IMG/VR virus record: IMGVR_UViG_3300020477_000990
Span: 124,001 to 188,000 of that record
Length of the DNA stretch: 64,000 nucleotides
Strand: one strand, 5' to 3'
Numbering within the stretch: the stretch's first letter is position 1; every line of letters starts with the position of its first letter. The notes beneath the pieces are model-generated. The model ran no database searches, was not told the DNA's origin, and worked only from the letters and a program-made list of their open reading frames with translations. The position numbers and the translations under genes were made by a program. Shown here piece by piece: positions 17,410 to 56,650 of the stretch.

Positions 17410-17440
17410 TGTATTAACCAAGTATATAATGAAAGGCTTT

Positions 17441-18276: not shown

Positions 18277-18639
18277 ATGAACCAGAAGTTGTTTAAAATT
18301 TTATTATATACATTTATGTTTTCCGGAATAGCCAATGCAAATGAAAACGAGCAAAATATAGAACTGGTTACAAAGAAGTTTGCAAACCATTTACTCCATG
18401 AAGTTGTCCCAGAAATAACAATACCAGAATATCTAAAAAATAAATTACCAGACAGTATTAGTTTTAGTGGCTTTGATGAAATGCATTATGATCGTAATGG
18501 TAACACTTACACCATAGATCCATTTAATCCAATTGATAAAATAGAATATAATTTTGGAGAAGATAAAAATAAATCAATAACTTATGACAGTAATGGTCAA
18601 GTGTACTTTCAATTTAAAAAATCATTTAACTGGAAATAA
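18277..18639 (+). CDS. Secreted/outer-membrane hypothetical protein
   Basis: Signal peptide ending GIANA; C-terminal YFQFKKSFNWK. Confidence 0.65.
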   Translation: MNQKLFKILLYTFMFSGIANANENEQNIELVTKKFANHLLHEVVPEITIPEYLKNKLPDSISFSGFDEMHYDRNGNTYTIDPFNPIDKIEYNFGEDKNKSITYDSNGQVYFQFKKSFNWK

Positions 18640-19467
18640 TAAATTATTAGCTTCTGTATAAAGTTGATTACCAAATTCTTTATGCACACTAGGACCCAAA
18701 TGCCAACCATCTCTAGCATTATCATCACGACCTAATTTTTCTTTAACGGCAGAGTGTACAGTTTTTAAATCACGGACTTTTAAACTTATTAGCCTTGTGT
18801 TCTTACAAATAAGATTTACCATATTAAAGTTTTTTATAAAATTTTCTCTAACAGTAATGTTATCAAATCCTGCAGATCGATCTGGTACAATTTTTTTATG
18901 TATAACAGTTCCATCTTCTTGAATAAACTCTCCCCAGTTTAACCAAGCATATAATACGACAACAAGATCAGGTTTAATAGTGTCAATTGATCTATAAAGT
19001 AATCTTGTAATGTAATCATTAGGAACACCAGCTACACCTAAATTAATAAGTTTAGTATTGTTTATTTTTTCTTTATTAAATCTTTGTTTTAAATGATACG
19101 GCCATATTTGTTTGTCATCTAAACCAGTACCAAACGTACTACTTGAACCACAAACTAATATTGTAAAATTTGAAGGAGAATCTATTTCATCTCCTCTATA
19201 ACCTAAACTGTTAAAAGTATAGTTAACATTATCCGATGTATAGTTCCAATCTTTATGAGGTGGGTTTAATTTTAAATTGTTAAAGTTTTTTTCATTGTCT
19301 ATTGAAAACCATTTAGCAGTTGAGTTTCGTTTAACACCTTTAACCCAATCACATTGTAACCCATTAGTTTCATCTATCCATTTAAATGATTTTGCTTCGT
19401 TGATAATATCAGGTACACCTAATGTCCAATATTGATCATTAATATCCGTTGTCGTTAAAGTCGTCAT
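18622..19467 (-). CDS. SGNH/GDSL-like protein
   Basis: VCGSSSTFG, NLGVAGVPND, DGWH. Confidence 0.7.
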   Translation of the reverse strand: MTTLTTTDINDQYWTLGVPDIINEAKSFKWIDETNGLQCDWVKGVKRNSTAKWFSIDNEKNFNNLKLNPPHKDWNYTSDNVNYTFNSLGYRGDEIDSPSNFTILVCGSSSTFGTGLDDKQIWPYHLKQRFNKEKINNTKLINLGVAGVPNDYITRLLYRSIDTIKPDLVVVLYAWLNWGEFIQEDGTVIHKKIVPDRSAGFDNITVRENFIKNFNMVNLICKNTRLISLKVRDLKTVHSAVKEKLGRDDNARDGWHLGPSVHKEFGNQLYTEANNLLFPVK

Positions 19468-19759
19468 ATAGTGTGTACGTGGCAGTTAATTCATCACCTG
19501 CTTTAATTGGTCTAATAGTCATTAAATAACACACAGGTTTTTGATGCCAATATCCTTTTATATTTCTGCAATTTGGATTATCTGAATGATTATAAAATGC
19601 ACCTAAGGCAGTTCTAATCGCACCATGTGGAAAGTTTTTATCTAATATATGAACAATACCTAATACAATATCTTCTTTAAAATCTTTAGTAGCAAATAAT
19701 CCTAATCCTTGCACATTAGATTCTTTGATAGTAATTCCGTCTGGTAGTGGCTTGTACAT
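19439..19759 (-). CDS. SET-domain protein (lysine methyltransferase fold)
   Basis: GLGLFAT...NHSDNPN...IKAGDELTATY. Confidence 0.85.
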   Translation of the reverse strand: MYKPLPDGITIKESNVQGLGLFATKDFKEDIVLGIVHILDKNFPHGAIRTALGAFYNHSDNPNCRNIKGYWHQKPVCYLMTIRPIKAGDELTATYTLYDDFNDNGY

Positions 19760-19763
19760 AATA

Positions 19764-20045
19764 TTAATCTAAGTCTAAGTGGTCGTCAGTTTCAACTAAT
19801 GGTAAAATAGTTCCATCATACATTGGTTCGCTGTGGTCACCCCAACCTAGAAGATCATACTCTTCTCTAGTAATACTCCATTCAGAAGTAAGAACTAGAT
19901 CATTGCCAACCATTGCTTTTTTAAATTTAATTCTTCCATTAGCATTAGCCTGTGTACCCATGTTTGTACTTGATGTTCCTTCTAACCATGCATTTACTAT
20001 ATCAACTGCGTTATCAGTACCGTCTGTTTTAAAAGATATAATCAT
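19764..20045 (-). CDS. Hypothetical protein
   Basis: SD AGGA; TAAATA upstream at 20077-20072. Confidence 0.7.
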   Translation of the reverse strand: MIISFKTDGTDNAVDIVNAWLEGTSSTNMGTQANANGRIKFKKAMVGNDLVLTSEWSITREEYDLLGWGDHSEPMYDGTILPLVETDDHLDLD

Positions 20046-20074
20046 AATAATCCTTGTTTCCTGTAAATATATAT

Positions 20075-20239
20075 TTATTGTTTATTCTTTTTTAATTTAG
20101 CAATACGTTCTTTTTTAGCTTTAATGCTTTGATCATAGCTCATACGTAATTCTTTTATTTCTTCAATAACACGATCGGCAAAGTCTTTTCTAGCTTTTCT
20201 TATATTTTTTTCTGTACCCACCCAAATAACTTTGATCAT
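20075..20239 (-). CDS. 54-aa basic protein (not in ORF track)
   Basis: MIKVIWVGTEKNIRKARKDFADRVIEEIKELRMSYDQ...; ATGA overlap. Confidence 0.55.
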   Translation of the reverse strand: MIKVIWVGTEKNIRKARKDFADRVIEEIKELRMSYDQSIKAKKERIAKLKKNKQ

Positions 20240-20448
20240 TTAACCCGGCTATCGTAGACATATTCACGTCCACGCATTTCACAAATCCAAACACTTCCAC
20301 GATACTGTTTAAATACCATTTTAATAGATTTTTCTAGGATTATTGTTTTATCACCATTTGGATGATTTTTAATTACTACTCCATTAGCAGTAACGCCATT
20401 ATCTGTACAGGTAATTTTTACTATTTCTTCTTCTTGTTCTCTATACAT
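20236..20448 (-). CDS. Hypothetical protein
   Basis: Promoter TTGACA upstream near 20485-20480. Confidence 0.7.
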   Translation of the reverse strand: MYREQEEEIVKITCTDNGVTANGVVIKNHPNGDKTIILEKSIKMVFKQYRGSVWICEMRGREYVYDSRVK

Positions 20449-20485
20449 ATAATTTATAATATACTACAATATTAAAATTTGTCAA

Positions 20486-20821
20486 CTATAATATTTTTAA
20501 TTTAAAGTTAAAGCAATCTGTTTTCTTTTGAAAAGTCATAACAGCCCGTTGTCTAGCTGGCCAAGAACGTGATGGTTGACAATCTTCAAAGAACCACCCA
20601 AACTTACCATCACAATATTTGTCACACCAATTAATAATTTTCATATTAATATCTAACTTAACTAATGGAACATTATATTTAAAAGATTGATTAAATCCAC
20701 AACCTTTTCTTATAAGGCCGTTATTTTCTAAACGACAATCATCATATAACCAATCACTATCCATAATACCACTTTTAACGGCTTCTCTTATATTTCTTTT
20801 AATTACAGCACGATTAATCAT
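20486..20821 (-). CDS. Hypothetical protein
   Basis: WCDKYCDGKFGW...F...DCFNFKL pattern. Confidence 0.65.
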   Translation of the reverse strand: MINRAVIKRNIREAVKSGIMDSDWLYDDCRLENNGLIRKGCGFNQSFKYNVPLVKLDINMKIINWCDKYCDGKFGWFFEDCQPSRSWPARQRAVMTFQKKTDCFNFKLKIL

Positions 20822-20898
20822 TTTTTGTAATAGTGTATGACTAATAATACTCCTACAACAATAATAGTTGCGTATGTAAAAGCAGTATAACTATCCAT
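20818..20898 (-). CDS. 26-aa TM peptide
   Basis: MDSYTAFTYATIIVVGVLLVIHYYKK. Confidence 0.45.
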   Translation of the reverse strand: MDSYTAFTYATIIVVGVLLVIHYYKK

Positions 20899-20900
20899 GT

Positions 20901-21011
20901 TTATCTGTAAATAAAAGGATCTTGTTTCTTTAGTTTTTTAATTTTTTTACGGTATGCTCGCCAGATTTTAAAGTCAACCCATTTGTCTTTTAACCATCTA
21001 ATAATAAACAT
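20901..21011 (-). CDS. 36-aa basic peptide
   Basis: MFIIRWLKDKWVDFKIWRAYRKKIKKLKKQDPFIYR. Confidence 0.5.
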   Translation of the reverse strand: MFIIRWLKDKWVDFKIWRAYRKKIKKLKKQDPFIYR

Positions 21012-21013
21012 AC

Positions 21014-22195: not shown

Positions 22196-22227
22196 AACTA
22201 TATTTAACATAGCACAAAAAGGATAAA

Positions 22228-22629
22228 ATGTCTATAGAAGAAAAATATAAGAGCTATCAAGAACAATTAGAAGTACTTACTGAAAATATGGACAAATATC
22301 AGTACCTAATTAACATTGGGTCAAAAAATTCGATGCCAGAAGAATATAAATTAGACTCATTTAAAGTACATGGCTGTATGAGTCAAGTATGGCTAGTACC
22401 AAAATATAATGAAGGTAAAATAACTTTTATGGCTGACTCTGATGCACATATTACTAGAGGAGTAGTTACTATGGTAGCAGATATTTTTAGTGGGTCAACA
22501 GCAAAACAAATACAAGAAACAAATATTGATACTATAATTAATGGACTAGGTTTATTAAGTATTTTATCGCCCAATCGACGTAATGGTGCTTATAATATGT
22601 TTCATAAGGTAAAAGATTATGCCAACTAA
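22228..22629 (+). CDS. sufE: SufE family Fe-S sulfur-transfer protein
   Basis: KVHGCMSQVWL, ADSDAHITRG, LSPNRRNG. Confidence 0.9.
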   Translation: MSIEEKYKSYQEQLEVLTENMDKYQYLINIGSKNSMPEEYKLDSFKVHGCMSQVWLVPKYNEGKITFMADSDAHITRGVVTMVADIFSGSTAKQIQETNIDTIINGLGLLSILSPNRRNGAYNMFHKVKDYAN

Positions 22630-23434
22630 AATAGCTTGTATTGGTTGCAGTTGGACTGAAGGTATTGCAGTAGATGGTCAACTTATGGACCACCAAGATA
22701 CATATCCATATCTATTATCTAAATACTTAAGAGAAAATGCAAAAAATAATGTTATGTATAATGCTGGAAGGTCGGCGGCAGGAACAGAGTATTATCATTT
22801 AGTTACTGATTATCTAATTAAAAAATTTAATCCAGATATCTTTGTTATACAATTTACAACACATGATCGTGGAATATTACCGTTAGATCCAATTGATGAA
22901 AACGAGAAAAGATTAAATTTTGGTTATGATACTATTGATAACACTTATTGTAAAATTTGGGATAACAATAAAAGTATAATGCATTTAAGTCCTGGAATGG
23001 GTGCAAGTGCCAGTAAGCATAGTTCAGAAACACAATGGGATGGTTTAATAGATAAAATTTATAACGAACGAATAAAAGGAAAAATGGCTCCAGAAGTTGA
23101 ATTAGATACATTAAAAAAATATATTGCGTTGTGGTGGGAGCAATCAAAAAATTCAGATATACAAAAATATTTTTATTATTCTCATATGTATAGTTTGCTT
23201 GATTATTTAGAAGAATTAGGAAAGCAAGTAATTCCTTTTCATTGGATGAGATATAAACCAGAATTTAGAACTAAACTTTTTGAATTGAGACCATATCCAT
23301 CTATAGAAGGATTTTTAGGTAATAAACGTTTTAAAGATTTAACTCACGATAACGGATTTCATTTTGGTGTAGAAGGACACACTACGATAGTTCAGGAACT
23401 TTTAGGTCCTGCAATTCAGGAAATAATTCAATAG
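22619..23434 (+). CDS. SGNH/GDSL-like protein
   Basis: CIGCSWTEG, NAGRSAAG, DNGFH. Confidence 0.7.
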   Translation: MPTKIACIGCSWTEGIAVDGQLMDHQDTYPYLLSKYLRENAKNNVMYNAGRSAAGTEYYHLVTDYLIKKFNPDIFVIQFTTHDRGILPLDPIDENEKRLNFGYDTIDNTYCKIWDNNKSIMHLSPGMGASASKHSSETQWDGLIDKIYNERIKGKMAPEVELDTLKKYIALWWEQSKNSDIQKYFYYSHMYSLLDYLEELGKQVIPFHWMRYKPEFRTKLFELRPYPSIEGFLGNKRFKDLTHDNGFHFGVEGHTTIVQELLGPAIQEIIQ

Positions 23435-24611
23435 CATTTTCATTACGTAATTTATCAACCATATTAGTTCTTTCCCAAAACTTTGGAATAAGATGTGATG
23501 AATCTTTTTCATACATAAAGTGAATTAATTTATCATAACGTTTTTCTTTATTGTGTGTATACTTGTCAAACCATTCTTGTTCTTGAACGTATCTTTCTTC
23601 TAAACGTTTTTTCATTTCCATTGGAAGTATTTGTATAGAAAGTTCTTCTGGTACAAACAACGGATTAATCAAACTGCCACCAACAGCGTCAACCCAACCT
23701 TTTTGTATCCATTCATGATGAAAGTCTGGTACATGGAAACTATTATATACATTTAAACAAGTTGCAAGGAACACATATACATCTGGACAAATATCAAACA
23801 TACGTTTTCTATTTTCTTCAACTTGTTCCCATGATTGTCCTTTACGTAAGTATTCTCCACGTTTACCCATGCCATCTAACGAAGCACCTATTTTAACAGA
23901 TTCAAAACGATTCCATATTTCCATAACGTCTAATTTTTTAAATACCATTTGTGAAAAGTTTGTGTTGTACTTTAATCTTACGTGATACATTTTACGTTCA
24001 TCAAGTTTTTTTAGAATTCTATAATGCTCTTCCATAATTAATGGTTCACCACCTGCAAAGTATATTTCTTCTAAGCCGTCCATATATGGTTCAACTTTTT
24101 TCCAAAATGTTTCTTCGTCTTTATAAGGTCTTATAATTTTAGGCTGATCCAATGGGCCATATAATTTTACATTATCTTCATACCAACTTGATGATAAGTC
24201 TGGTCCACAAGTTCTACATTTAAAATTACACAAATTTGAAAATCTAAAATCAATATAAGGTAAGTTAATTTTATCAACTGTACCATCTTCTTTAGTGGTA
24301 CCAATCTTATCAAAATGATTTTCAAATGCTTCGTTGGCCCAAGTTCTTGTTGTATTCAATCCACTTGACTCCATGGAATAACAACGAGTACATTCTTTTG
24401 TTGGTTTATCTTTTAACATTGCTACACGCATTTTCTTTAACTTATCTGAATTCCAAATTTCTTCAAATGATTGATCTTTTAAGTTACCAAGTATCTCATT
24501 CATAGGAGCCATACAACAAGGTAACACTCTACCATCTGGCCATGAGTGTAAATGTGTCCAAGGTAACATACAAAATCGTTTTGATTTTTTTAATGCGTAA
24601 TCTTTATCCAT
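23382..24611 (-). CDS. Radical SAM protein with N-terminal twitch/SPASM-like Cys cluster
   Basis: CNFKCRTC; FCMLPW...PCC...CTRC; FAGGEP. Confidence 0.9.
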   Translation of the reverse strand: MDKDYALKKSKRFCMLPWTHLHSWPDGRVLPCCMAPMNEILGNLKDQSFEEIWNSDKLKKMRVAMLKDKPTKECTRCYSMESSGLNTTRTWANEAFENHFDKIGTTKEDGTVDKINLPYIDFRFSNLCNFKCRTCGPDLSSSWYEDNVKLYGPLDQPKIIRPYKDEETFWKKVEPYMDGLEEIYFAGGEPLIMEEHYRILKKLDERKMYHVRLKYNTNFSQMVFKKLDVMEIWNRFESVKIGASLDGMGKRGEYLRKGQSWEQVEENRKRMFDICPDVYVFLATCLNVYNSFHVPDFHHEWIQKGWVDAVGGSLINPLFVPEELSIQILPMEMKKRLEERYVQEQEWFDKYTHNKEKRYDKLIHFMYEKDSSHLIPKFWERTNMVDKLRNENAIELFPELQDLKVPELS

Positions 24612-25632
24612 TTACTTTTTCCTCAATGACGTTAATTAATAAAGGTATTGGTAGTTCAGATAATTTAATATGGTTTCGTGATATTAAACTTTGTGTTGCA
24701 TTTGAATTTACCATTTCATTCATTTTGTTAATGTCAATATTGATTAACCTTCTTAAGTTATCCTCTTTGATTCTATGCAATCTATCTGGATAGTTTACAT
24801 AATCAAAACTATAGTTAAACATATTATGATATGGTTTAATACCAAAAAATTCTTCTAAATGCTTACACATCTTTTTTGAACCCAATGGTATAAACGGTGT
24901 TTTATATAATATTGGCTTCCACGTCTTTTCAGTAATAAAAATACTAGTATCACTAACAATACTTTCTGTTACTATATCAAAACAAGATTCTCTATATTGT
25001 GGTGGAAGTATTTCCTGATTACTTTGTTCGTCAATTGTTTTTGCATCAAAATCTAAAGTTATTGTTTGGCCTTGAAAGTTTTCATTTGCTAAATGCTTTG
25101 TGTTAGGACCGTATCTATTTAGATATGTTATATAACCACGATGGTACCAATCGTTTGAAAAAATTGATTCTACTAAATGAAATCTATGTGGTTTCGCCGC
25201 GGCGTTCATGCAAATAAAATGCTTTGGCTTTTTATCCATATACTTCTTTTTGATTTTATGTTTGTAATAATGATCTATAGTTCTTTTTAATAATGTGTAT
25301 GGATAATAAACACAATGCCCAATAACCTTTGGCTCTTTATGATTCGTTTGCCAATGCGTATAGTTTTTTTCTAAATTAGCATCGCACATTACTAATACGA
25401 TTTTGTTATGATCGTATTCACGTAATATAGTATGCAGTCGTTGTAAAAATTCATCAGGACGTTTTAAATGAATTTCACCTTCATATGAATTTGATATAAC
25501 AATATATGGTTTTTCTTTTGCGTTTAACCATAAGTCGCGAGTATTTAATAAGTCTCTAAATCCTCGATCACGACCACAATCAAAATCGTATATAAGATAT
25601 GTTTTATTATTTTGAACTATAGTATTTGGCAT
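24604..25632 (-). CDS. GT10 (fucosyltransferase)-like glycosyltransferase, TEKT family
   Basis: FICMN...KPHR; FDIVTES...FITEKTWKP. Confidence 0.55.
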   Translation of the reverse strand: MPNTIVQNNKTYLIYDFDCGRDRGFRDLLNTRDLWLNAKEKPYIVISNSYEGEIHLKRPDEFLQRLHTILREYDHNKIVLVMCDANLEKNYTHWQTNHKEPKVIGHCVYYPYTLLKRTIDHYYKHKIKKKYMDKKPKHFICMNAAAKPHRFHLVESIFSNDWYHRGYITYLNRYGPNTKHLANENFQGQTITLDFDAKTIDEQSNQEILPPQYRESCFDIVTESIVSDTSIFITEKTWKPILYKTPFIPLGSKKMCKHLEEFFGIKPYHNMFNYSFDYVNYPDRLHRIKEDNLRRLINIDINKMNEMVNSNATQSLISRNHIKLSELPIPLLINVIEEKVNG

Positions 25633-26227
25633 GGTTTGTATCTAACCTCTTTAATATACTTTTTGCCATTGAGGTACTGTAACTATCAATAGCATTATCC
25701 CAATTGTCTTTAGTTGTAAAAACATCTTGAGGAGTTAAATCTGAATGAAGCCAACTTATGACTCCGCCCCTAGGCCAAGCACCTTCTAATTCGTCATCTA
25801 GTTGCTCAGGACTCCATAAAGCACAACCTACTGCAACTTTAAATAATTTTGGTCCATTGTCTTCTGATATTAGTTGTAATAAATGTTTGCTTGATGTAAC
25901 TGAAATTCCAGATGAAATATTAACGGTATCTTTATCATGATAGTCATGGCTATGTATTATAAAAACTTGTGATGTGTTTACAGGTCCACCATAATAGATT
26001 GGTTGGTTTTTCCATTTGTCAATACATTTTAAACCCATATCTAAACATATTTCTTCTAGGTTTAAACTTCTAGATGGCTTATTAAAAATAACAGCACTTG
26101 CTCCACTGGCGTCATGCCTTATTACTGCTGAAGTAGTTTTATAAAATCTAGGATCAGCCATATGTGGCATAGCAATTAGCATACGCCCTCTAATTCTTTT
26201 TAAGCCTTTATGTGTTTCATTACTCAT
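25607..26227 (-). CDS. YqgE/AlgH family protein
   Basis: LIAMPHMADPRF...IFNKP...YGGPV...GCALWSPEQLDDEL. Confidence 0.9.
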   Translation of the reverse strand: MSNETHKGLKRIRGRMLIAMPHMADPRFYKTTSAVIRHDASGASAVIFNKPSRSLNLEEICLDMGLKCIDKWKNQPIYYGGPVNTSQVFIIHSHDYHDKDTVNISSGISVTSSKHLLQLISEDNGPKLFKVAVGCALWSPEQLDDELEGAWPRGGVISWLHSDLTPQDVFTTKDNWDNAIDSYSTSMAKSILKRLDTNHAKYYSSK

Positions 26228-26237
26228 ATACTATTAC

Positions 26238-27557
26238 TTATCTTGCTAAAAATTCTAGCAATTTGTTCCACCTTTTGTTATGATTTCTGTTAAAAAAATG
26301 ATTCCTGTTATGTTCTAGTTTTTTCCAAACACTCCAGTAAATATTATGTAATTCTTTGATATCCATTTTGCATATACGTTCAATATTGTTCATAATAATT
26401 TTTAATCTTTTAGCTCGATCTAAAATATAATCATATGACTCATCAAACATTTCAGGAAATGTTTCATATCCTTCTGAACGCAAATACTCTAGGCAACCAG
26501 GGCCACTAGTAATAATAAATGGATGGTAGTTTACAAATGGCATATAAGTTTTTTCAGTAACAAACAAAGGAGCACCTGGCTGTGATTCAAATACAGTTTC
26601 AGTTACAAAACTAAAATATGTTTCTTTAAAATGATCTTTAATTAGTACACGTTGATTCATTCCATCGCCTATAGAATTAGAATCATGATCAAGTATTATT
26701 GGTGTTTTTTCTTTAAGCCACAATTTACTATATTCGTCTATTGTATTTGCTAATTGTAAATCTTCTTGTGTTAAATAACTTCTTAAATTGCCAATGCTAT
26801 CAGGAGTAAAGTATCGATTTAAAAAACTATGTATAGTTTGATCTTGCCAACCTTTTCTATATATTTCACTCATTATATAAATTCTATGTTCTCTTGGATT
26901 TGCATTTTTACATAAGAATTTGTGTGAACGTATATGTCCATTTGTTAATTCGTCTGGTTGTATTAATTCATTTGCTACACCTTTTGTTTTGTGATTTTTA
27001 AAGTATCTTACATCACACTCATGACGATAGTTTGTTTCAAATATATTAAATGGATAAACATTTATTTTTTGATCATCACCAATTCTTTTTGCTCTTTGGT
27101 ATGCTTTATAACTTCCTACTATGTTTAAGTCTCCATAAACCATATACACTTTTTCAAAAGGAATTCCTTTATCATTAATACTCCAGATTATATCATCTAA
27201 AAATCGTGGCATAGATAAATGAAAACCTTCTGATGGGAACCATATTAATACTCTTATATTATTATTTGGATTACGTAATAATTCTAATATAGGTTCGTCA
27301 ATATAATGGAAAACGTTTTCATAAAAGAAAGCTAAATCAATCCATTCTGGCTGTATATGATAATACGTTATTTCATTTGTATGTGTGTCATTTATACTTT
27401 TAGAATTCCATTGTATATTTTGTACTTCTAGCATTTTTTCTAAATAGTTTGCTTTTACATTTCCATACCCATTTGAATTTATTTTTCTTTTGTGTGGAGG
27501 TATAGAGTTTGGTATAGGCACACCGTTAATCCAATTTTGATATAATAAATTAAGCAT
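26238..27557 (-). CDS. GT10-like glycosyltransferase, TEKT family
   Basis: FLCKN...REHR; FSFVTET...FVTEKTYMP; start MLNLLY. Confidence 0.55.
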   Translation of the reverse strand: MLNLLYQNWINGVPIPNSIPPHKRKINSNGYGNVKANYLEKMLEVQNIQWNSKSINDTHTNEITYYHIQPEWIDLAFFYENVFHYIDEPILELLRNPNNNIRVLIWFPSEGFHLSMPRFLDDIIWSINDKGIPFEKVYMVYGDLNIVGSYKAYQRAKRIGDDQKINVYPFNIFETNYRHECDVRYFKNHKTKGVANELIQPDELTNGHIRSHKFLCKNANPREHRIYIMSEIYRKGWQDQTIHSFLNRYFTPDSIGNLRSYLTQEDLQLANTIDEYSKLWLKEKTPIILDHDSNSIGDGMNQRVLIKDHFKETYFSFVTETVFESQPGAPLFVTEKTYMPFVNYHPFIITSGPGCLEYLRSEGYETFPEMFDESYDYILDRAKRLKIIMNNIERICKMDIKELHNIYWSVWKKLEHNRNHFFNRNHNKRWNKLLEFLAR

Positions 27558-28323
27558 TTTCAATCCAAGGTTTAATAACTTGTTTAGCAAAGTTCCAGTG
27601 GCAATCTGTTGACGGATGACCAATCATAATTTTTTGACCGTCAACATCATGCCACCCTTTTGCCGGAACATTAACTTTGTCTTCGTGTAATGCTCCAGTA
27701 AAACCGTTTGCAATCCCCCATTCAGCTATTCCACCATACTTTCCATGAAACCAAAATTGATTCCAATCAATTTGATCCCACCAATTGGTTAATTCAGCTG
27801 AACTTTGTATTTGTTTTTCGTATTGTTCAAATTCGTTTTTCCAACATATGAATAAAGTTTTTACGTCATTTATTTTACATAGTTTTTGTAAATGTACAAT
27901 TCCTATTAAAGTTCTTAATATTTGCTGTACATCTGAATGAGTATATTTTATATAAGCATCTAACCGATCGCTAATATGTTTACTTGTTCGAAATAAGTCA
28001 AAGTTATTTTGTTGAATGCCTCTCCACCAACGTTGGTCTCCTGTACTTTTAATCCAAGTATAATTTTCTTTTGGTACAATGTAATTGTTTGATGATTCTA
28101 TTTTTTCATCTATTACTATTTCGAATCTGTTAATTCCACTTATTTGTGATATAATGTGAGTATAAGGATAAGTTAATAATTCTAAACTAGCATTTCGCAA
28201 ACTCATTTCATTACCACTTCCACCTTCAGCAATATTAGTTAAATCAAATTGTTCTTTTAAATAATTTGCCCAAGAGTTAGGTGCATGAGTAAATGAACAG
28301 CCAGTAGTTAGAATTTTATACAT
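27550..28323 (-). CDS. SGNH/GDSL-like protein
   Basis: TTGCSFT, NIAEGGSGN, GHP. Confidence 0.7.
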   Translation of the reverse strand: MYKILTTGCSFTHAPNSWANYLKEQFDLTNIAEGGSGNEMSLRNASLELLTYPYTHIISQISGINRFEIVIDEKIESSNNYIVPKENYTWIKSTGDQRWWRGIQQNNFDLFRTSKHISDRLDAYIKYTHSDVQQILRTLIGIVHLQKLCKINDVKTLFICWKNEFEQYEKQIQSSAELTNWWDQIDWNQFWFHGKYGGIAEWGIANGFTGALHEDKVNVPAKGWHDVDGQKIMIGHPSTDCHWNFAKQVIKPWIENA

Positions 28324-28762
28324 TTACATTTCCTAGTGTTGCTAATATACTATAAATTATATTTGCCCACTTGTCAGCATCTTTTTCTGTAATAACAATG
28401 TCAGCGTCATCACCATTTGCTATAATAGGTTTTACAAACATTTCATTTGTATCGTTAAAATCTGATTTTTCTATAGTATTCATCCAAATAGTATAATCGG
28501 CTTTAAATATTTTTCTTGTTTCTAAAGTAGGGCAAATGAAATCAGCTATTACATGATGTCCTTCTTCGATCCATGCATCTGCAATATCACTCATACGTTT
28601 GGCTTGTCTTATTCTACCCATTTCACTATAGTCAAAATTTTGATCTGACTTTCTAATAGCATCAGCATTTAACCATTTTGCATTTAATAATGGATATAAC
28701 TTTGATGCCAAAGTTGTTTTACCTGATCCTGGTAATCCCATTATTAGTATTTTACTCTTCAT
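28316..28762 (-). CDS. cysC: Adenylyl-sulfate (APS) kinase-like P-loop kinase
   Basis: GLPGSGKTT, LNADAIR, GRIRQA, IADFICP. Confidence 0.75.
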   Translation of the reverse strand: MKSKILIMGLPGSGKTTLASKLYPLLNAKWLNADAIRKSDQNFDYSEMGRIRQAKRMSDIADAWIEEGHHVIADFICPTLETRKIFKADYTIWMNTIEKSDFNDTNEMFVKPIIANGDDADIVITEKDADKWANIIYSILATLGNVNV

Positions 28763-29573
28763 TTATTAACCTTTCTACGATATCATTTGCAAAACTTTTT
28801 TGTGCATCTGTTGTAGGATGACTTCCTGGAAATTGTTCGTATCCATTATCAATGCACCATTCTTTAAGACCACCATATTGGTTAGTCCATTCTTTTGTAT
28901 GACTATGATGAAACCACCAAGAGTTCCAGTCTATTAATTCCCATAAGTGAATTGCATTATCGTATTTGTTTACAATTAACTCACCACGTTCATTTGAGTT
29001 GTTTCCGTCTTGATTGTTTTGCCCTGTAAATATATCTTGCCAACACATATTAATTAATCTTAAATTGTTTGATTTACAATACCATTGTATTCTTAATATA
29101 TGTTCTAATGTTTGAACAAATTGTAATTCTTCGTTATGGAAATTTGCAAGATACATTTTCATATGTTGATTAACATCTGCATTGTCAAATTGCCAATGCC
29201 CAAAGCCTCCACCACTCTTTAACCAGTTAGAGTCTTTATGTGATTTCCATTTTCCAGTTAATGGTTGATTTTGGAACCCACCATTACCTTTCATGTCATT
29301 GTAAATTTTATTATAATTGTTACTTTCATGGTTATAAAATAATTCAAATCTATTTGGATTTGACCACATAACAATTACAGTTGGATCTTTATCTAAATAA
29401 TGTGGAATGTTAGCAAGTAAGTTTCTGCTAATTAAAGCATTACCGCTAGCCATTTCTGAACAATCAATTATTTCATAACTGTTTCCTAAATGATTAGGCC
29501 ATGCAATGTTAGGTTCTACTTTATGTCCAGTAAAACTACACCCAGATATTATTAAGTACTTTTTGTTTTCCAT
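28752..29573 (-). CDS. SGNH/GDSL-like protein
   Basis: ISGCSFT, ASGN, SHP. Confidence 0.7.
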   Translation of the reverse strand: MENKKYLIISGCSFTGHKVEPNIAWPNHLGNSYEIIDCSEMASGNALISRNLLANIPHYLDKDPTVIVMWSNPNRFELFYNHESNNYNKIYNDMKGNGGFQNQPLTGKWKSHKDSNWLKSGGGFGHWQFDNADVNQHMKMYLANFHNEELQFVQTLEHILRIQWYCKSNNLRLINMCWQDIFTGQNNQDGNNSNERGELIVNKYDNAIHLWELIDWNSWWFHHSHTKEWTNQYGGLKEWCIDNGYEQFPGSHPTTDAQKSFANDIVERLINEE

Positions 29574-30564
29574 AAATTTTTTTATATATTGTTTTTAAAT
29601 ATTTTTCACGCCAATCAGTATTAAGTGCTAATTGCTGATTGTATAGCATTTTTTCCTTTACTTGCTCAACTATTTCTGATTGTATAAATGGTAATGGTGT
29701 TGAACAAAATTTTAATATTTCTTTTTCAGGGTTATTGTTGTAATCAAATATTTCATCATACAGTTTAAATCCAAATGATTCTAAAGCGTCATAATAATCA
29801 ACAGGTTGGCCTACGCCATAAAATAAAAATAGTTGCAAGTTTAATATTGGTTTCCATGTTTTCTCAGTAAAAAATACTGTGTTGTCTTCGTGAGTTTCAT
29901 TTATAACATTTAGCCAAGATTGATACATCATATCTATTGGAACTATTTTGTCGTCTGTGTTTAATCTATCAGTTCCAGCATCTAATATAATTGGTTCAAC
30001 TTTTTCTCCAGTAGTATTATAATTACCAACTAAACTTATGTAATTGTCCATTAGTCTGTTTTCTTTACAAAAATTTACAAATTGTAAACGTTTTGGTTTA
30101 ACGGCACCGTTAAGGCTCATCATATGGCAAGTTCTATTTTCATTAAAATTATTAACATACTCATATTTCTTTTGTACGTCTAAGAAGTAAAAAGGATATG
30201 TATGCCTATGCTTAATAATTTCTTTTTGGTTACTTTCTCTGCACCAAGAAAGATATTGCTGATCAAAATTAATACTAGGCATAATCATATGAATATCATT
30301 TGGATCTATTTTACTTTCTTCTAATATTGTATGTAACTTTTCAAATACTGGTAATCCATCATCTAACGATGGACCTGGAATGTCAGCTTCAGTTAATTCT
30401 TCAATAATAAATTTGCATTCTTCATTTTGTTTTTTAGCTTTGTTATAAATTTTGTTATGTGTTATCATTAATGGCAAAGGATGTCCACTAAACAATCCTT
30501 CACGTTCTCCATTTTTACTTGGAGTATAACGCCAATATGGATAACTGTTATACAATACTCTCAT
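29536..30564 (-). CDS. GT10-like glycosyltransferase, TEKT family
   Basis: MMSLNG..KPKR; LNVINET...FFTEKTWKP. Confidence 0.55.
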   Translation of the reverse strand: MRVLYNSYPYWRYTPSKNGEREGLFSGHPLPLMITHNKIYNKAKKQNEECKFIIEELTEADIPGPSLDDGLPVFEKLHTILEESKIDPNDIHMIMPSINFDQQYLSWCRESNQKEIIKHRHTYPFYFLDVQKKYEYVNNFNENRTCHMMSLNGAVKPKRLQFVNFCKENRLMDNYISLVGNYNTTGEKVEPIILDAGTDRLNTDDKIVPIDMMYQSWLNVINETHEDNTVFFTEKTWKPILNLQLFLFYGVGQPVDYYDALESFGFKLYDEIFDYNNNPEKEILKFCSTPLPFIQSEIVEQVKEKMLYNQQLALNTDWREKYLKTIYKKIYGKQKVLNNIWV

Positions 30565-31696
30565 TAAATATTCCTTCAACTAATTTTATATGTGTCTCAG
30601 CTCTGCTTATTAAGTTAGCATAATTATAAACAGCATTTGAAAACATATCAACTGGTACACCATCTTTACATAATTTTTCAACTTGATCAATTGCTAAATT
30701 CATTCTTTTATATGCATCCGGTTCTTTATCATACTCTTCATTTATATATGGATCAAATGTTTTATAACCTTGTTCTTTTAAATTATGTAAAAAGTTTTGT
30801 GTTGATAAAGCAATAAATGGATGACAGTTTATAATTGCTTTGTATATTTTTTCTGTTGGAAAAAATTGTGGATTACAATTATGAGCACCACTATGTGTTT
30901 CTGATACTACACTAAAGTAAGTATCTAAATATAATTTTTTATCAAAAGGATAACCACTAAAGTGCTTTCCATATAATCCTTGTTTAACATTATGTTCATC
31001 TAATGAGTGAGGCCAATGCTTACATAATTTATCGTAGTCTGTTTTACTAATTAAGTCTTTGACTTCATTATAATAATCTTCTAGGCTAGGGTATTTTTCA
31101 ATATCTTCTTCTGTTCTTGTTAAAGTAATTAACCCATTATTCATTAATCTACGTTGCCAATATAAAACAATTTGTCTTAATCTCATAAACTTATCAGGCT
31201 TACCATTTAATGATAAGAATGATCTTACTGCAACTTTACGTTTTGCTTCAAATGGAGATACGTGTTCACAAATCTTTTGATCTAATATTTTTTTATAAGC
31301 ATCAACTTCATAATATGGAAATGTAATAATGTTAAATGCTTTTGGCTTTAAGTTATGTTTTTTTGCTATAATCTCATGTGTTTCTTTACCTAAATCTGTT
31401 GAGTAAAAATAATAAATTTTATGTGCTGGCACACCTTCTTTAACTAAATCGTGTCCTAATAGTATTTGTTTCTCAACGTGTTTGTCATGAGCGAACGCAG
31501 GTTCACGCATATAACATATAGCTAGTTTTTTACTAAACTTAATGGCATTCATTGGTCCGTGATACCAAACATCATGATGTATAAAAGGATAATCAACGTC
31601 ACTTCCGTAAAATGCTAGTTCATAATGATCTTTACTATTAATAAATTGACTTATTGACTCTTCTTTAATATATTGTCCAATAGTTAATGGAATCAT
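30548..31696 (-). CDS. GT10-like glycosyltransferase, TEK family
   Basis: FLSLNGK...MR; FSVVSET...FPTEKIYKA. Confidence 0.55.
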   Translation of the reverse strand: MIPLTIGQYIKEESISQFINSKDHYELAFYGSDVDYPFIHHDVWYHGPMNAIKFSKKLAICYMREPAFAHDKHVEKQILLGHDLVKEGVPAHKIYYFYSTDLGKETHEIIAKKHNLKPKAFNIITFPYYEVDAYKKILDQKICEHVSPFEAKRKVAVRSFLSLNGKPDKFMRLRQIVLYWQRRLMNNGLITLTRTEEDIEKYPSLEDYYNEVKDLISKTDYDKLCKHWPHSLDEHNVKQGLYGKHFSGYPFDKKLYLDTYFSVVSETHSGAHNCNPQFFPTEKIYKAIINCHPFIALSTQNFLHNLKEQGYKTFDPYINEEYDKEPDAYKRMNLAIDQVEKLCKDGVPVDMFSNAVYNYANLISRAETHIKLVEGIFNESIV

Positions 31697-32205
31697 TTTG
31701 TTACCTTACTGTATAATGCAAAGTCACCTGAATACAAGCGACTTAAATCATTTGAATATTTTTTAATTACGATATCGTGTATTTTTTGAATATTTAAATC
31801 GTCTTCTCTTCTTGATTCTTTTTTAATTTTAATATCTGATATTGTAGTAAAGTCATCATCAAAATTTTCTAATGTTCCAATAAAATTAAAATCATTTTTT
31901 TTAATATAAAGACTATAAGGAACACAATGCTCGTTGAAGTTGTCAAAATTACTTATAATGCTTTTAATTTTTTCTTCTGCTTCTTGTTCTGTATAACAGT
32001 TTTCTTGAAACAAATAACTTCTAAGTCGCATCATAGGTAATCTAATAAATGTAAAAGTTGGTTTAGCCTTTTTCTTTTTTGTTTCTTTCATAGATAAAGT
32101 ATTAATTATAATTGACGATGCACATTTAGGAACTACAATATAGTTCCATGTTTTATTAGAAAATATTCTTCCTGCATATCCAAATGAATTTATTATAGCA
32201 TTCAT
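31693..32205 (-). CDS. Sulfotransferase family 2-like protein
   Basis: VVPKCASS (5'-PSB) and FTFIRLPMMRLRSY (3'-PB). Confidence 0.7.
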   Translation of the reverse strand: MNAIINSFGYAGRIFSNKTWNYIVVPKCASSIIINTLSMKETKKKKAKPTFTFIRLPMMRLRSYLFQENCYTEQEAEEKIKSIISNFDNFNEHCVPYSLYIKKNDFNFIGTLENFDDDFTTISDIKIKKESRREDDLNIQKIHDIVIKKYSNDLSRLYSGDFALYSKVTK

Positions 32206-32879
32206 ACGTTTTCCTCTACCCATGGAAGTATAATTTCTTCTGCAAATTTATCATGCTGTTCTTTAGTAGGATGATTACCTTCTGCAAATCCTGGATCCCA
32301 CATTTCATCTACGCACCATTCTGCCATGCCTCCTGTTTTCTTATGAAACCAAAATTGATTCCAATCAACCAATGATACATCTATATCTATTTTTGATAAT
32401 TCATCTTTCCACCAAAAGTTTAACATTGGTATTCTATTAAGTTTGCAATACCATTGTGTTCTTGCTATGTGTTCTAAACTTTCGATAGCACCTTGTTGTT
32501 CGTTATAAATTTTTCTATATGGCTCAAACAAATGTTTTTCAGCTGAATCATTTTCTGATACTTTGTTGTCTACACCATTGCCACCATTTTTAATCCAATA
32601 GCCATTTCGTGTTTTATCTATATATGGTGAACCTTGTTCAAAGCCAAAATCGTGTTCGGTTAAAAATGCACGTCTATGAATTCCACTCCATTGGCATATT
32701 AAGACTCTAGGAAAGTCTTTTAATGTTTCACACATCTTTATTGCTTGTCTGGAAATATAGTCATTACCTGCGGCACAAGAGGCCACATTTCTTACGATAT
32801 ATTTTTCATCGAGTTTACCTGCCCAGGTCATTTCACTATTATATGTGAAGCTACACCCAGCCACTATCACATTGGTCAT
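32202..32879 (-). CDS. SGNH/GDSL-like protein
   Basis: VAGCSFT, NVASCAAGND, NHP; TTGCAT-17-TATAAT just upstream of ATG 32879. Confidence 0.7.
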   Translation of the reverse strand: MTNVIVAGCSFTYNSEMTWAGKLDEKYIVRNVASCAAGNDYISRQAIKMCETLKDFPRVLICQWSGIHRRAFLTEHDFGFEQGSPYIDKTRNGYWIKNGGNGVDNKVSENDSAEKHLFEPYRKIYNEQQGAIESLEHIARTQWYCKLNRIPMLNFWWKDELSKIDIDVSLVDWNQFWFHKKTGGMAEWCVDEMWDPGFAEGNHPTKEQHDKFAEEIILPWVEENV

Positions 32880-50945: not shown

Positions 50946-51053
50946 TCTAAGTATATAGTTATATTATTGTGGTGTTTAATATAAATAACTTATATAAAGT
51001 TGGTATTTTATATACTACTTTAATAAAGATTGAAACGCAGGAGAAATTAAATT

Positions 51054-52391: not shown

Positions 52392-52392
52392 G

Positions 52393-53325: not shown

Positions 53326-53344
53326 TATTATAGTTAAAAAGTAT

Positions 53345-53393: not shown

Positions 53394-53399
53394 TTTTTT

Positions 53400-56649: not shown

Positions 56650-56650
56650 T

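Follow-up and report, generated by a model that had tools for sequence, protein, structure and literature searches.

A fibre-linked island of predicted glycan-building enzymes in an uncultured marine jumbo phage

We asked what an uncultured marine jumbo phage might make with a dense set of predicted sugar-adding and sugar-editing enzymes drawn from families with no studied member. The genes lie in a 64,000-nucleotide stretch of IMG/VR record IMGVR_UViG_3300020477_000990 (positions 124,001 to 188,000; hereafter the window, in whose coordinates all positions are given). The original prediction, made from sequence alone, described the range 18622-32879 as a paralog-expanded, self-contained glycan-tailoring line in which an unknown glycan on the virion or host surface is built, acylated, sulfated and oxidised. 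As we will demonstrate below, the gene content was read correctly, but the range is only one arm of a larger cluster that flanks the baseplate and fibre genes on both sides. The same cassette recurs next to fibre genes in hundreds of other phage contigs, and it probably builds an elaborate glycan whose target could be either the phage fibre or the host surface.

Gene content and paralogy of the island

The open reading frames lie where originally placed, mostly on the minus strand and with overlaps of 4-38 nt, and we found no gene in the range that requires reading through a stop. Its main features are as follows:

18622..19467 (-), S1, distant SGNH-like protein with an N-terminal extension of ~100 residues
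21014..22210 (-), rSAM1, radical SAM enzyme with an N-terminal twitch domain
22228..22629 (+), SufE-like sulfur acceptor, between the two radical SAM genes
22619..23434 (+), S2, SGNH-like protein
23382..24611 (-), rSAM2, radical SAM enzyme with an N-terminal twitch domain
24604..25632 (-), T1, GT-B glycosyltransferase-like protein, nearest GT10 by predicted fold
25607..26227 (-), AlgH-like DUF179 protein, a variable insert to which we assign no role
26238..27557 (-), T2, paralog of T1 (439 aa in the public gene call, which starts at 27557; the mechanical ORF runs to 27623)
27550..28323 (-), S3, SGNH-like protein
28316..28762 (-), APS-kinase-like P-loop kinase (148 aa, short C-terminus)
28752..29573 (-), S4, SGNH-like protein (the copy that was modelled)
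29536..30564 (-), T3, paralog of T1 (342 aa in the public gene call; the mechanical ORF runs to 30579)
30548..31696 (-), T4, paralog of T1
31693..32223 (-), sulfotransferase-2-like protein (176 aa)
32202..32879 (-), S5, SGNH-like protein (225 aa in the public gene call)

In addition to these and the AlgH-like gene, the range holds a SET-domain gene and three small ORFs that the original prediction had not listed.

The observation of a paralog-rich enzyme island is confirmed. Within the island, blastp joins T1-T4 (E 1e-3 to 1e-17, 24-28% identity), S3/S4/S5 (E 1e-20 to 1e-27), and rSAM1 with rSAM2 (E 1e-54, 30% identity). S1 and S2 are too divergent for blastp, but profile-profile comparison (hhalign) joins them to the S3-5 family across both the Ser and the His blocks (S1, prob 98.8%, E 9e-17; S2, prob 97.2%, E 3e-11). 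The proposal that the set was diversified by duplication needs qualifying, however, as the paralogs are old orthogroups, one per phage and in conserved order across relatives, rather than recent duplications. In contrast, the kinase, sulfotransferase, SufE and AlgH-like genes are variable inserts, and the SufE and AlgH-like genes are found only in the closest relatives.

The T proteins carry an F-x-T-E-K motif, as originally described. An AF2 model of T1 (pLDDT 92.7) has a GT-B fold, and its best PDB hit in a Foldseek search is the GT10 fucosyltransferase FUT13 (7yro, E 3e-4, prob 1.0), followed by other GT-B enzymes, although the TM-scores are low (0.40-0.45). The named viral hits in BFVD are likewise fucosyltransferases, and one family member is fused to a UDP-glucose/GDP-mannose dehydrogenase. 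In the model, E235 and K236 sit at the start of helix 235-242, resembling Y246/E249/K250, which contact GDP-fucose in the H. pylori GT10 enzyme (PMC11468063). At the sequence level, no link to GT10 or to any CAZy-type family was found: T1 has no Pfam or PDB sequence hit, and even a 55-sequence profile matches neither PF00852 nor any GT10 chain in the PDB. T is thus GT10-like by fold and motif only, and constitutes a separate, unnamed family of more than 13,000 clusters.

The S proteins have a G(C/S)S(F/W/S)T motif, a GN block and a near-C-terminal His, and in an alignment of 33 sequences G11, S13, R75 and H252 are invariant and N45 nearly so. An AF2 model of S4 (pLDDT 88.5) is SGNH-like, with nearly all of the top ~35 Foldseek PDB hits being natural SGNH/GDSL esterases, and Ser and His are aligned. 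S3-5 nonetheless lack the Asp of the DxxH block. S1 has a GSSST block, with D253 and H256 invariant in its subfamily, but no Pfam hit; S2 matches Lipase_GDSL_2 only below the cut-off (E 1.4e-4), with S11, D244 and H248 invariant in its subfamily.

Contrary to the original suggestion, the radical SAM enzymes are not of BtrN type, and no oxidising role is shown. rSAM1 and rSAM2 match NF033640 at 395.7 and 410.1 bits against a cut-off of 170, and in rSAM1 the SPASM match (residues 13-82) precedes Radical_SAM (121-287), placing the twitch domain at the N terminus. rSAM1 has CX3CX2C, GGE and four N-terminal Cys. The SufE-like protein matches PF02657 at E 1.4e-34, and the HGCMSQVW cysteine block is present; the AlgH-like protein matches PF02622 at E 2.9e-27.

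Evidence for the sulfation branch is weaker. The kinase matches Pfam APS_kinase (PF01583) at 36.8 bits against a cut-off of 21.1, but only over profile positions 4-94 of 152; its best PDB hit is the APS kinase 2yvu (E 4.9e-5, over residues 6-86), and LDGD reads LNAD. The sulfotransferase-like protein has no Pfam, PHROG, NCBIfam or PDB sequence hit, and is supported only by language-model neighbours (the nearest Atlas clusters are viral and partly carry PF03567; score 0.96, 195 of 256 shared features) and by PK-x-x-S-S and R-x-P-x-x-R-x-x-S motifs read by eye. The originally proposed pairing of PAPS supply and use is weak, as the kinase-like gene occurs in 9 of 80 related loci where no sulfotransferase-like gene was detected, and both genes sit at different positions in relatives.

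A second arm and its recurrence in other phages

Is the island self-contained, as originally proposed? It is not. We saw no nucleotide-sugar synthesis, priming, flipping or export genes, and the conserved core of the system (three GT-A-like transferases plus radical SAMs after fibre genes) lies outside the island, on the plus strand at 50298-60608:

50298..53750 (+), structural part: a phrog_11259 protein, a fibre-like protein with a Peptidase_G2-like C-terminus, an S/T-rich fibre-like protein (52393-53325) and a small conserved protein
53747..57685 (+), predicted transferases: two GT-A (nucleotide-diphospho-sugar transferase-like) proteins at 53747-54628 and 55173-56048, a HAD phosphatase-like protein at 54625-55176, an unknown protein at 56035-56649 and a GT2-like protein at 56651-57685
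57682..60608 (+), rSAM3 and rSAM4, two more N-twitch radical SAM enzymes (57682-59088 and 59085-60608)

The structural part was assigned from PHROG hits and from matches to clusters c12, c11, c6 and c7 (protein clusters of the recurring cassette). The transferase assignments rest on phrog_1903, Atlas names and structural neighbours, and the HAD_2 match is weak (E 7.6e-5). rSAM3 and rSAM4 have Radical_SAM Pfam hits, fall in the same cluster as rSAM1 and rSAM2, and show the same Cys pattern, so the window has four radical SAMs of this family rather than the two originally counted.

This arm matches a cassette found in hundreds of IMG/VR contigs and in one cultured phage, Ralstonia phage RsoM2USA, whose ORF349 is 42% identical to rSAM3. 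The families co-occur strongly whichever anchor is used. In 78 T-anchored viral loci, the radical SAM family occurs in 53-58; in 80 radical-SAM-anchored loci (mean 5.35 radical SAMs per ~20 kb), the GT2-like protein occurs in 68, the GT-A pair in 63, T in 57 and S in 46 (clusters c3 and c2 are conserved in 63 and 68 of these loci). The order is fixed, on one strand: fibre-like, fibre-like, small protein, GT-A, GT-A, small protein, GT2-like, radical SAMs and T, with c6-c7 directly preceding the GT-A pair in 17 of 21 evaluable loci. In RsoM2USA, the genes just upstream of the cassette (ORF361, 359, 356) are virion proteins confirmed by mass spectrometry (PMC8504454). The protein at 52393-53325 is the most S/T-rich in the window (S+T content of 24.8% against a window mean of 11.7%), but as fibre proteins are S/T-rich in general, this point is weak.

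Further context favours sugar chemistry. Related cassettes add a carbamoyltransferase, a StrB1-like amidinotransferase (E 5.7e-91), a UDP-glucose dehydrogenase-like protein (assigned by eye from its N-terminal sequence only) and a B12 radical SAM, families known mainly for acting on sugars or cyclitols. In a 1.46 Mb Chitinophagales contig, a T relative lies among GDSL, DXD-GT, UDPG dehydrogenase, GT4, carbamoyltransferase and ABC-transporter genes, that is, in a polysaccharide gene cluster. No island enzyme has a membrane segment or signal-like stretch, and all look soluble.

A model for fibre-linked glycan assembly

Taken together, the original interpretation is supported only in part. Of the conditions named beforehand as capable of overturning it, we could examine whether the TEK proteins lack a GT-B fold, whether the SGNH catalytic residues fail to align and whether the families fail to co-occur; none proved to be the case. 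The claims of a self-contained line, of BtrN-type enzymes, of diversification by duplication and of paired PAPS supply and use require the corrections given above.

In our preferred but tentative reading, the island is the tailoring arm of a two-arm, fibre-linked glycosylation system working in the cytoplasm of the infected cell. GT-A-like transferases of the second arm would start and extend a glycan, to which T1-T4 would add further sugars from nucleotide sugars; in this view, the four share a conserved C-terminal donor site (R150, E223, F-x-T-E-K) but have divergent N-terminal acceptor halves, so each probably makes a different linkage. SGNH-like proteins would add or remove O-acyl groups, and a sulfotransferase-like protein would add sulfate, perhaps fed by the APS-kinase-like kinase. 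Four N-twitch radical SAM enzymes, possibly supplied with Fe-S clusters via SufE, would perform C-H chemistry on the sugars (epimerisation, oxidation, deoxygenation or similar). The most likely acceptors would be the phage's own fibre or baseplate-associated proteins: the S/T-rich protein at 52393-53325, the fibre-like protein at 51054-52391 and the 3986-residue protein.

Our analysis establishes the folds (as models), motifs, paralogy, co-occurrence, synteny with fibre genes and absence of membrane segments, whereas every activity, the order of the steps and the acceptor are inferred. We consider it likely that this is a glycan assembly and tailoring system, but hold the assignment of a virion protein as acceptor only tentatively. 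Several considerations weigh against the model: twitch/SPASM radical SAMs more often act on peptides than on sugars; no nucleotide-sugar genes were seen in the window; a scan for promoters and terminators, which might have indicated expression timing, gave nothing above chance; and a position next to fibre genes fits a hypervariable host recognition cluster equally well, for which host-glycan remodelling has been proposed (PMC7029224).

Alternative interpretations

The close rival, although we consider it on balance less likely, is remodelling of the host envelope, in which the enzymes would alter cytoplasmic precursors of the host's LPS, capsule or S-layer glycan (nucleotide sugars or lipid-linked units), and the changed cell surface would block superinfection or stop progeny from sticking to debris. 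This is the reading given for glycosyltransferase and radical SAM cassettes in pelagimyophage host-recognition clusters (PMC7029224), and it is consistent with the bacterial T relative in an ABC-transporter-type polysaccharide cluster. The window also encodes a polysaccharide lyase and a fibre with a CBM5/12 module, so host glycans matter to this phage, and soluble glycosyltransferases commonly act on lipid-linked units at the inner face of the membrane. However, neither arm has a membrane protein, flippase, polymerase, priming transferase or AT3-type acyltransferase, and SGNH proteins without a signal peptide cannot reach periplasmic or surface glycans. In addition, the cassette is co-directional with, and immediately follows, fibre genes in most loci, which suggests late expression, a poor time to change the cell surface.

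Less probable is a small-molecule pathway, in which the wider cassette would make an aminocyclitol or aminoglycoside-like pseudo-oligosaccharide, or another decorated sugar metabolite, rather than a polymer or glycoprotein. Related loci, including two that share the island's gene order (L003 and L005), carry a StrB1-like inosamine-phosphate amidinotransferase (E 5.7e-91 to 1bwd), and many carry a NodU/CmcH-type carbamoyltransferase. Twitch radical SAMs, kinases and glycosyltransferases are typical of aminoglycoside pathways, and the authors of cyanophage S-SCSM2R called a similar gene set 'antibiotic synthesis genes' (PMC12801897). Against this, we found no amidinotransferase, carbamoyltransferase, aminotransferase or inositol/cyclitol synthase in this window and no exporter, seven or more transferases are far more than such molecules need, and the fixed position after fibre genes is left unexplained.

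Equally improbable is that the radical SAM enzymes modify protein rather than sugar, making cross-links or epimerising residues in fibre proteins (as in RiPP-like chemistry) while the transferases glycosylate the same proteins. Most characterised SPASM/twitch radical SAMs act on peptides, the weaker NCBIfam matches include sactipeptide and ranthipeptide maturases, and the radical SAM copies follow fibre genes, with a small conserved protein between them. Those NCBIfam matches are, however, far below their cut-offs, no short precursor-like peptide or recognition-element domain was seen (the small protein at 53400-53750 looks globular and sits where a fibre chaperone would), and radical SAM copy number tracks the sugar-enzyme genes.

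Finally, DNA hypermodification, with GT-B enzymes glycosylating modified bases and the kinase, radical SAM and esterase-like proteins building or trimming the adduct, has precedents in phage GT-B enzymes that glycosylate DNA (Pyle et al. 2024, cited in PMC12619734) and in the P-loop kinases and radical SAMs of thymidine hypermodification, but is very unlikely, because the cassette lies in the structural module rather than among replication genes, no base hydroxymethylase or DNA-binding domain was found among the scanned genes of the window, the bacterial relative lies in a polysaccharide cluster, and sulfotransferase, carbamoyltransferase and SGNH genes fit glycans better.

Relation to known systems

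The T proteins are closest to the GT10 alpha-1,3/4-fucosyltransferases (H. pylori FucT, 2NZW; mango FUT13, 7YRO), the best structural match in both the PDB and BFVD. They share the predicted GT-B fold, an aromatic-x-x-E-K block at the start of a C-terminal-domain helix, and an invariant Glu in the N-terminal half followed by an invariant Arg about 100 residues later, which resembles Glu95 and Arg195 of the H. pylori enzyme. In addition to the missing sequence-profile match and low TM-scores, they differ in that Phe replaces the Tyr and in that the family is almost entirely viral and metagenomic (8 loci in 185,579 species genomes). The S proteins share with SGNH/GDSL hydrolases and carbohydrate esterases (TesA, acetylxylan esterases) the fold, an N-terminal GxSxT with an invariant Ser, a Gly/Asn oxyanion block and a C-terminal invariant His, but score below the Pfam cut-off or not at all, have a large insert between blocks III and V, and lack a signal peptide; they may act as esterases or as transferases.

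The radical SAMs belong with the NF033640 N-terminal-twitch proteins, a family with no member of known substrate and for which our literature search found no paper. Like BtrN, a sugar-acting twitch enzyme, they have one auxiliary-cluster domain (CX3CX2C plus four conserved Cys, enough for one auxiliary cluster) and sit in a sugar context, but their domain order is reversed relative to BtrN, and they occur as 3-8 paralogs per locus.

The original statement that no characterised equivalent exists in phages holds for biochemistry. However, glycosyltransferase and radical SAM cassettes embedded among tail-fibre genes in a variable region have been described in the host-recognition cluster of marine myophages (PMC7029224), and cyanophage S-SCSM2R has a cluster of GTs, a radical SAM and an amidinotransferase, although its radical SAM barely matches this family (E 2.4e-5). 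Those reports are descriptive and interpret the genes as O-antigen modification or 'antibiotic synthesis'; the T, S and N-twitch families, their orthogroup structure and the fixed fibre-to-transferase order were not described. Virus-encoded virion glycosylation, which our model would extend by inference only, likewise relies on soluble virus-encoded transferases that decorate virion proteins in the cytoplasm, as for mycobacteriophage capsid and tail-tube glycans (Freeman et al. 2023, cited in PMC12619734). Chlorovirus and mimivirus machinery provides giant-virus cases. The phage systems use one to a few ordinary GT2/GT4-type enzymes, without the radical SAM, SGNH and sulfotransferase sets seen here.

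Genomic setting and gene content of the island

The 328 kb IMG/VR contig to which the window belongs comes from a marine metagenome, and the same phage, with an identical T1 protein (the first of four glycosyltransferase-like paralogs, T1-T4), was seen on 24 contigs, including a Tara Oceans assembly. Its baseplate wedge protein (34343-38293) is 38-43% identical to those of the jumbo myophages SCTP-2, Atu_ph07 and PA5oct. A nucleotide search of the island against GenBank phages found no match, and a tblastn search of the same set with T1 likewise found nothing. GC content is about 0.30 throughout, with no compositional break at the island; it rises locally to 0.41 at 2001-4000, against 0.27-0.35 around it, in a region with few long ORFs, and this rise is not explained by any Rfam or tRNA match, as scans of the window for both were empty. 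The genes that surround or interrupt the enzyme genes include the following:

9396-10046 (+) and 11397-12497 (+), a SleB-type cell-wall hydrolase (PF07486) and a polysaccharide lyase (PF14099, E 6e-21), upstream of the island, so the phage also degrades host envelope polymers
17429-17827 (+), a full-length ribosomal protein L7/L12 with both Pfam domains (E 1e-21 for the C-terminal domain), kept in the other contigs of this phage
19439-19759 (-), a 106-residue SET-domain protein (PF00856, E 1e-11) inside the island, conserved at 69% identity in one related locus; a minimal viral SET methyltransferase in a phage has no obvious target
32923-33486 (-), a ClpP-family protease that heads the minus-strand gene run and diverges from the gp25-like baseplate gene, conserved at 81% identity in the closest relatives; it could be a prohead protease or a true Clp subunit
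38297-50257 (+), a single 3986-residue ORF following the wedge gene, with a CBM5/12 carbohydrate-binding module and an E1_FCCH-like domain near the C-terminus, which matches part of the >288 kDa virion protein ORF361 of Ralstonia jumbo phage RsoM2USA
62040-62636 (+), a protein with a glycine-zipper / 17 kDa surface-antigen domain and a hydrophobic N-terminus, like an outer-membrane lipoprotein, beside a gp5-like baseplate hub gene (62633-63736)

The observation on which the original prediction was based, a paralog-rich run of glycan-tailoring-type genes, is confirmed. The ORFs lie as described, nearly all on the minus strand from 32879 down to 18622, with short overlaps, whereas SufE and one SGNH-like gene are on the plus strand between the two radical SAM genes of the island (rSAM1 and rSAM2); we found no gene in this range that is interrupted by a stop codon. 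Comparison within the island by blastp confirms three paralog sets, namely T1-T4 (24-28% identity, E down to 1e-17), the SGNH-like proteins S3, S4 and S5 (25-28% identity, E 1e-20 to 1e-27), and rSAM1 and rSAM2 (30% identity, E 1e-54). The remaining SGNH-like proteins, S1 and S2, are more distant, but profiles built from their relatives align by hhalign to the S3-5 profile from the Ser block to the His block (prob 98.8% and 97.2%), so all five are homologous. Pfam confirms SufE, an AlgH-like DUF179 protein, the SET domain, and SPASM plus Radical_SAM. The SufE match extends over the full domain (PF02657, 118.9 bits against a cut-off of 27, positions 2-120 of 121), and the persulfide-accepting Cys is present in the HGCMSQVW block.

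Predicted folds and family assignments

To test the proposed resemblance of the T proteins to GT10 fucosyltransferases, we built an AF2 model of T1 on a 33-sequence alignment. The model is confident (pLDDT 92.7), with alternating beta/alpha elements in two halves as expected of a GT-B fold, and its best Foldseek match in the PDB is mango FUT13, a GT10 enzyme (E 3e-4, prob 1.0), followed by other GT-B enzymes. Against predicted viral structures, uncharacterized members of the family itself come first, and the first named hits are fucosyltransferases of Bodo saltans virus, Solivirus and cyanophage S-SKS1. The T proteins carry an F-x-T-E-K block that opens helix 235-242 of the C-terminal domain, in which K is invariant and E nearly so across 55 sequences; GT10 enzymes have a donor-site Y-x-x-E-K block in the C-terminal domain, and in the H. 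pylori enzyme Tyr246, Glu249 and Lys250 contact GDP-fucose (PMC11468063), although this comparison was made without a residue-level structural superposition. Conserved positions concentrate in the C-terminal half, while the N-terminal halves barely align, a pattern that fits a shared type of donor with different acceptors. At the sequence level, in contrast, three attempts to link T to GT10 failed: none of 33 members gave a PF00852 hit at E up to 10, and profile searches of the PDB with 33 and with 55 sequences found no GT10 chain, the only hits being chance matches to sphingomyelinase. T is therefore a distinct GT-B family that is GT10-like, not a demonstrated GT10 member.

For the SGNH-like proteins, a profile of the family searched against the PDB reached only a block-I match to a GDSL protein at E 0.019, so fold prediction was needed. 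The model of S4 (pLDDT 88.5) matches nearly exclusively natural SGNH/GDSL enzymes over its top ~35 PDB hits, apart from a few designed scaffold proteins (prob 0.87-1.0, TM by target up to 0.63), as expected for the flavodoxin-like alpha/beta/alpha fold. In the block I GxSxT motif, G and the nucleophilic Ser position are invariant in all five window copies and in 33 family members. A single G-x-G-N or A-G-N block with a near-invariant Asn was seen in place of separately resolved blocks II and III of the oxyanion hole. In the region of block V (DxxH), His is invariant in all copies, with Asp at -3 in S1 and at -4 in S2, but S3-5 have no conserved Asp. None of the five reaches the Pfam gathering score of a GDSL model: S2 scores 22.8 bits against a cut-off of 32.9, and the other four have no hit.

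The evidence for the proposed sulfation pair is weaker. The kinase-like protein exceeds the Pfam cut-off for APS_kinase (PF01583, CysC; 36.8 bits against 21.1), which is the best of 12 P-loop families and is also recorded in precomputed annotation, and its best solved relative is an APS kinase (2yvu, E 4.9e-5). However, only positions 4-94 of 152, the N-terminal two thirds of the model, match; LDGD reads LNAD, SFISP reads DFICP, and at 148 aa, against 175-210 aa for solved APS kinases, the protein lacks the C-terminal third. A full APS kinase domain has the LDGD block and a C-terminal lid that closes over APS. The proposed sulfotransferase has no Pfam, NCBIfam, PHROG or PDB sequence hit. Its language-model neighbors in the Atlas are viral clusters that partly carry PF03567 (score 0.96), and two stretches resembling the 5'-phosphosulfate and 3'-phosphate binding motifs for PAPS, VPKCASS and F-I-R-L-P-M-M-R-L-R-S, can be read by eye; we regard this as a supported lead and not as proof. 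PHROG and NCBIfam scans of the T, S and sulfotransferase-like proteins gave nothing useful, and a literature search found nothing specific on phage sulfotransferase and kinase pairs.

The radical SAM enzymes carry an N-terminal twitch domain

Both rSAM1 and rSAM2 match NCBIfam NF033640, 'twitch domain-containing radical SAM protein' (N_Twi_rSAM), at 395.7 and 410.1 bits against a cut-off of 170, covering model positions 1-397 of 398. Two further window copies, rSAM3 and rSAM4, cluster and align with them, although their placement rests on this comparison and not on an NCBIfam scan. In the CX3CX2C motif C128, C132 and C135 are invariant, and this motif, GGE and four Cys of the N-terminal domain (C14, C33, C74 and C77) are conserved across the family and in all four window copies. 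The original prediction had invoked BtrN-type twitch enzymes, which oxidize sugars; these dehydrogenases act on 2-deoxy-scyllo-inosamine and have the twitch domain C-terminal to the core. Here the order is reversed, with the SPASM/twitch match at residues 13-82 and the radical SAM core at 121-287, and no BtrN model appears among the listed NCBIfam matches. We also considered a viperin-like antiviral or nucleotide role and rejected it, as the viperin model scores 38 bits against a cut-off of 180. The family is very large, with more than 5,600 clusters at 90% identity, all unnamed, and a literature search found no paper on NF033640. Among metagenomic proteins (P0103-P0110 and P0223-P0233), both the N-twitch radical SAM and the T family occur as tandem double-domain fusions of about 680-980 residues, and one T member is fused to a UDP-glucose/GDP-mannose dehydrogenase.

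The island is one arm of a wider fiber-linked cassette

To determine whether the island stands alone, we clustered the genes of 78 viral loci found with the T profile. This revealed a recurring order, in which fiber-like proteins (clusters c11 and c6) are followed by a small protein (c7), two GT-A-like proteins (c3), a small protein, a GT2-like protein (c2), several N-twitch radical SAMs with T genes interleaved, and often c10, S genes and a carbamoyltransferase. The window has this cassette on the plus strand at 50298-60608, right after the 3986-residue protein, with two further radical SAMs. Atlas neighbors name c3 a nucleotide-diphospho-sugar transferase and c2 a GT2-like protein, whereas c10, about 350 aa and conserved after the radical SAMs, has no PDB sequence relative. 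All-against-all hhalign of 20 cassette gene clusters found no hidden relationships beyond the three S subfamilies.

A reciprocal scan was anchored on the radical SAM, for which a broad 29-sequence alignment proved too diverse and a 9-sequence alignment was used. It gave 80 loci with a mean of 5.35 radical SAMs each, among which c2 occurs in 68, c3 in 63, T in 57, S in 46, the kinase-like gene in 9 and the sulfotransferase-like gene in none. The c6-c7 genes directly precede the GT-A pair in 17 of 21 evaluable loci, and in 46 of 80 loci every cassette gene is on one strand. A promoter and terminator scan found no more sites than in shuffled sequence, and thus says nothing about operon structure or timing.

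Among 50,697 GenBank phage records, only RsoM2USA has the GT-A pair. It carries c6, c7, c3, c3, c2, a radical SAM and a second c2-like gene, all annotated 'hypothetical', with ORF355 as the c6-like protein, and the genes just upstream (ORF361, 359, 356) are virion proteins confirmed by mass spectrometry (PMC8504454). In addition, a 148-kb Haliscomenobacter sp. MAG contig (locus L085), binned as bacterial, carries the full phage-type cassette of six radical SAMs, five or six T genes, c10, carbamoyltransferase, S, amidinotransferase and c2; it is probably a phage contig or a prophage rather than a cellular locus.

Origin of the paralogs

In seven related loci at 35-75% identity, the order S5-T4-T3-S4-S3-T2-T1-rSAM2-S2-rSAM1 is kept, with minor local rearrangements and an extra T copy (T5) in the more distant loci. 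A maximum-likelihood tree of the T proteins resolves five orthogroups, each with one member per phage, of which the window and its closest relative lack the fifth. The copies are therefore old and individually conserved, as expected for enzymes with distinct steps, rather than a recent lineage-specific burst. In contrast, the sulfotransferase-like gene, the kinase, AlgH and SufE sit at different places in relatives or are absent, and so are accessory.

Evidence for a glycan product and its possible acceptor

Several features of related loci point to sugars. Related cassettes carry a carbamoyltransferase and a B12 radical SAM, as well as a protein whose N-terminal sequence we read by eye as UDP-glucose dehydrogenase-like. 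A close homolog of the StrB1 inosamine-phosphate amidinotransferase (E 5.7e-91 to PDB 1bwd) is present in related loci L031 (18146-19189), L003 (15348-16415), L005 (17119-18240) and about 15 others, and cyanophage S-SCSM2R and Campylobacter phage CP220 carry one too, which hints at guanidino-sugar or cyclitol chemistry in phages. T relatives are almost absent from cellular genomes (8 loci in 185,579 species, several on short or phage-like contigs), but on a 1.46 Mb Chitinophagales contig a T relative lies among two GDSL genes, a DXD transferase, a UDPG dehydrogenase, a GT4, a carbamoyltransferase and an ABC transporter.

With regard to the acceptor, none of the enzymes in either arm has a hydrophobic stretch that could be a membrane segment or signal peptide, and no flippase, polymerase, priming transferase or membrane acyltransferase is present. 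The arms flank the gp25-like, wedge and giant fiber genes, the last of which encodes the CBM5/12-containing protein, and the c6-type protein at 52393-53325 is the most Ser/Thr-rich in the window (24.8% against 11.7 ± 3.9%). These points favor a cytoplasmic protein acceptor, namely the phage's own fibers, but do not exclude action on lipid-linked host glycan precursors, which is the reading offered for similar cassettes in pelagimyophages (PMC7029224).

Taken together, the interpretation given in the original prediction is partly supported: the glycan-tailoring reading is broadly supported, but the island is not self-contained as had been claimed, it is one arm of a widespread fiber-linked cassette, the radical SAMs are N-twitch enzymes (with chemistry that can at most be conjectured) and not BtrN-type, and the sulfation pair is an accessory feature of this lineage that rests on weak evidence. 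The paralogy, motifs, predicted folds and gene order come directly from the analysis, whereas the activities (including any GDP-fucose-dependent inverting transfer by the T proteins, and the substrates of the radical SAMs) and the acceptor are inferred. We tentatively place virion fiber proteins first as acceptor and consider host envelope precursors somewhat less likely; the remaining possibilities, each improbable, are protein-directed radical SAM chemistry, a small-molecule product or DNA modification.

A more far-reaching reading is not excluded, although we consider it unlikely on present evidence. In this view, a large, mostly uncultured set of phages, including this marine jumbo phage, would decorate its own tail-fiber proteins with a complex, heavily edited glycan, built by a new GT-B family and then rewritten by batteries of N-terminal-twitch radical SAM enzymes through C-H chemistry on sugars already in place (epimerization, oxidation or deoxygenation), with SGNH acyl editing to follow and, in this phage, sulfation as well. 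This would be a virion 'glycan coat' system with no counterpart among studied phages.

Three large protein families with no characterized member work together here, namely the T family (about 13,600 clusters at 50% identity), the N-twitch radical SAM family and the phage SGNH-like family, and they sit in a fixed position after tail-fiber genes in hundreds of phage contigs. Working out their product would assign function to a sizeable block of viral 'dark matter', and would probably reveal new radical SAM sugar chemistry and a new glycosyltransferase family. It would also settle whether phages of Gram-negative marine hosts glycosylate their receptor-binding proteins, a question that bears on host range, on resistance to host proteases and glycan-binding defenses, and on how metagenomic 'LPS genes' in phages should be read. 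As the cultured phage RsoM2USA carries the core cassette, the question is open to experiment.

Relation to known systems

The T, S and N-twitch families, their orthogroup structure and the fixed cassette order are not described in the reports that come closest to this system. Glycosyltransferase-rich, radical-SAM-containing variable regions next to fiber genes have been noted in marine myophages (PMC7029224); a cyanophage has a GT, radical SAM and amidinotransferase cluster, which its authors read as antibiotic synthesis; and virion glycosylation is established for mycobacteriophages.
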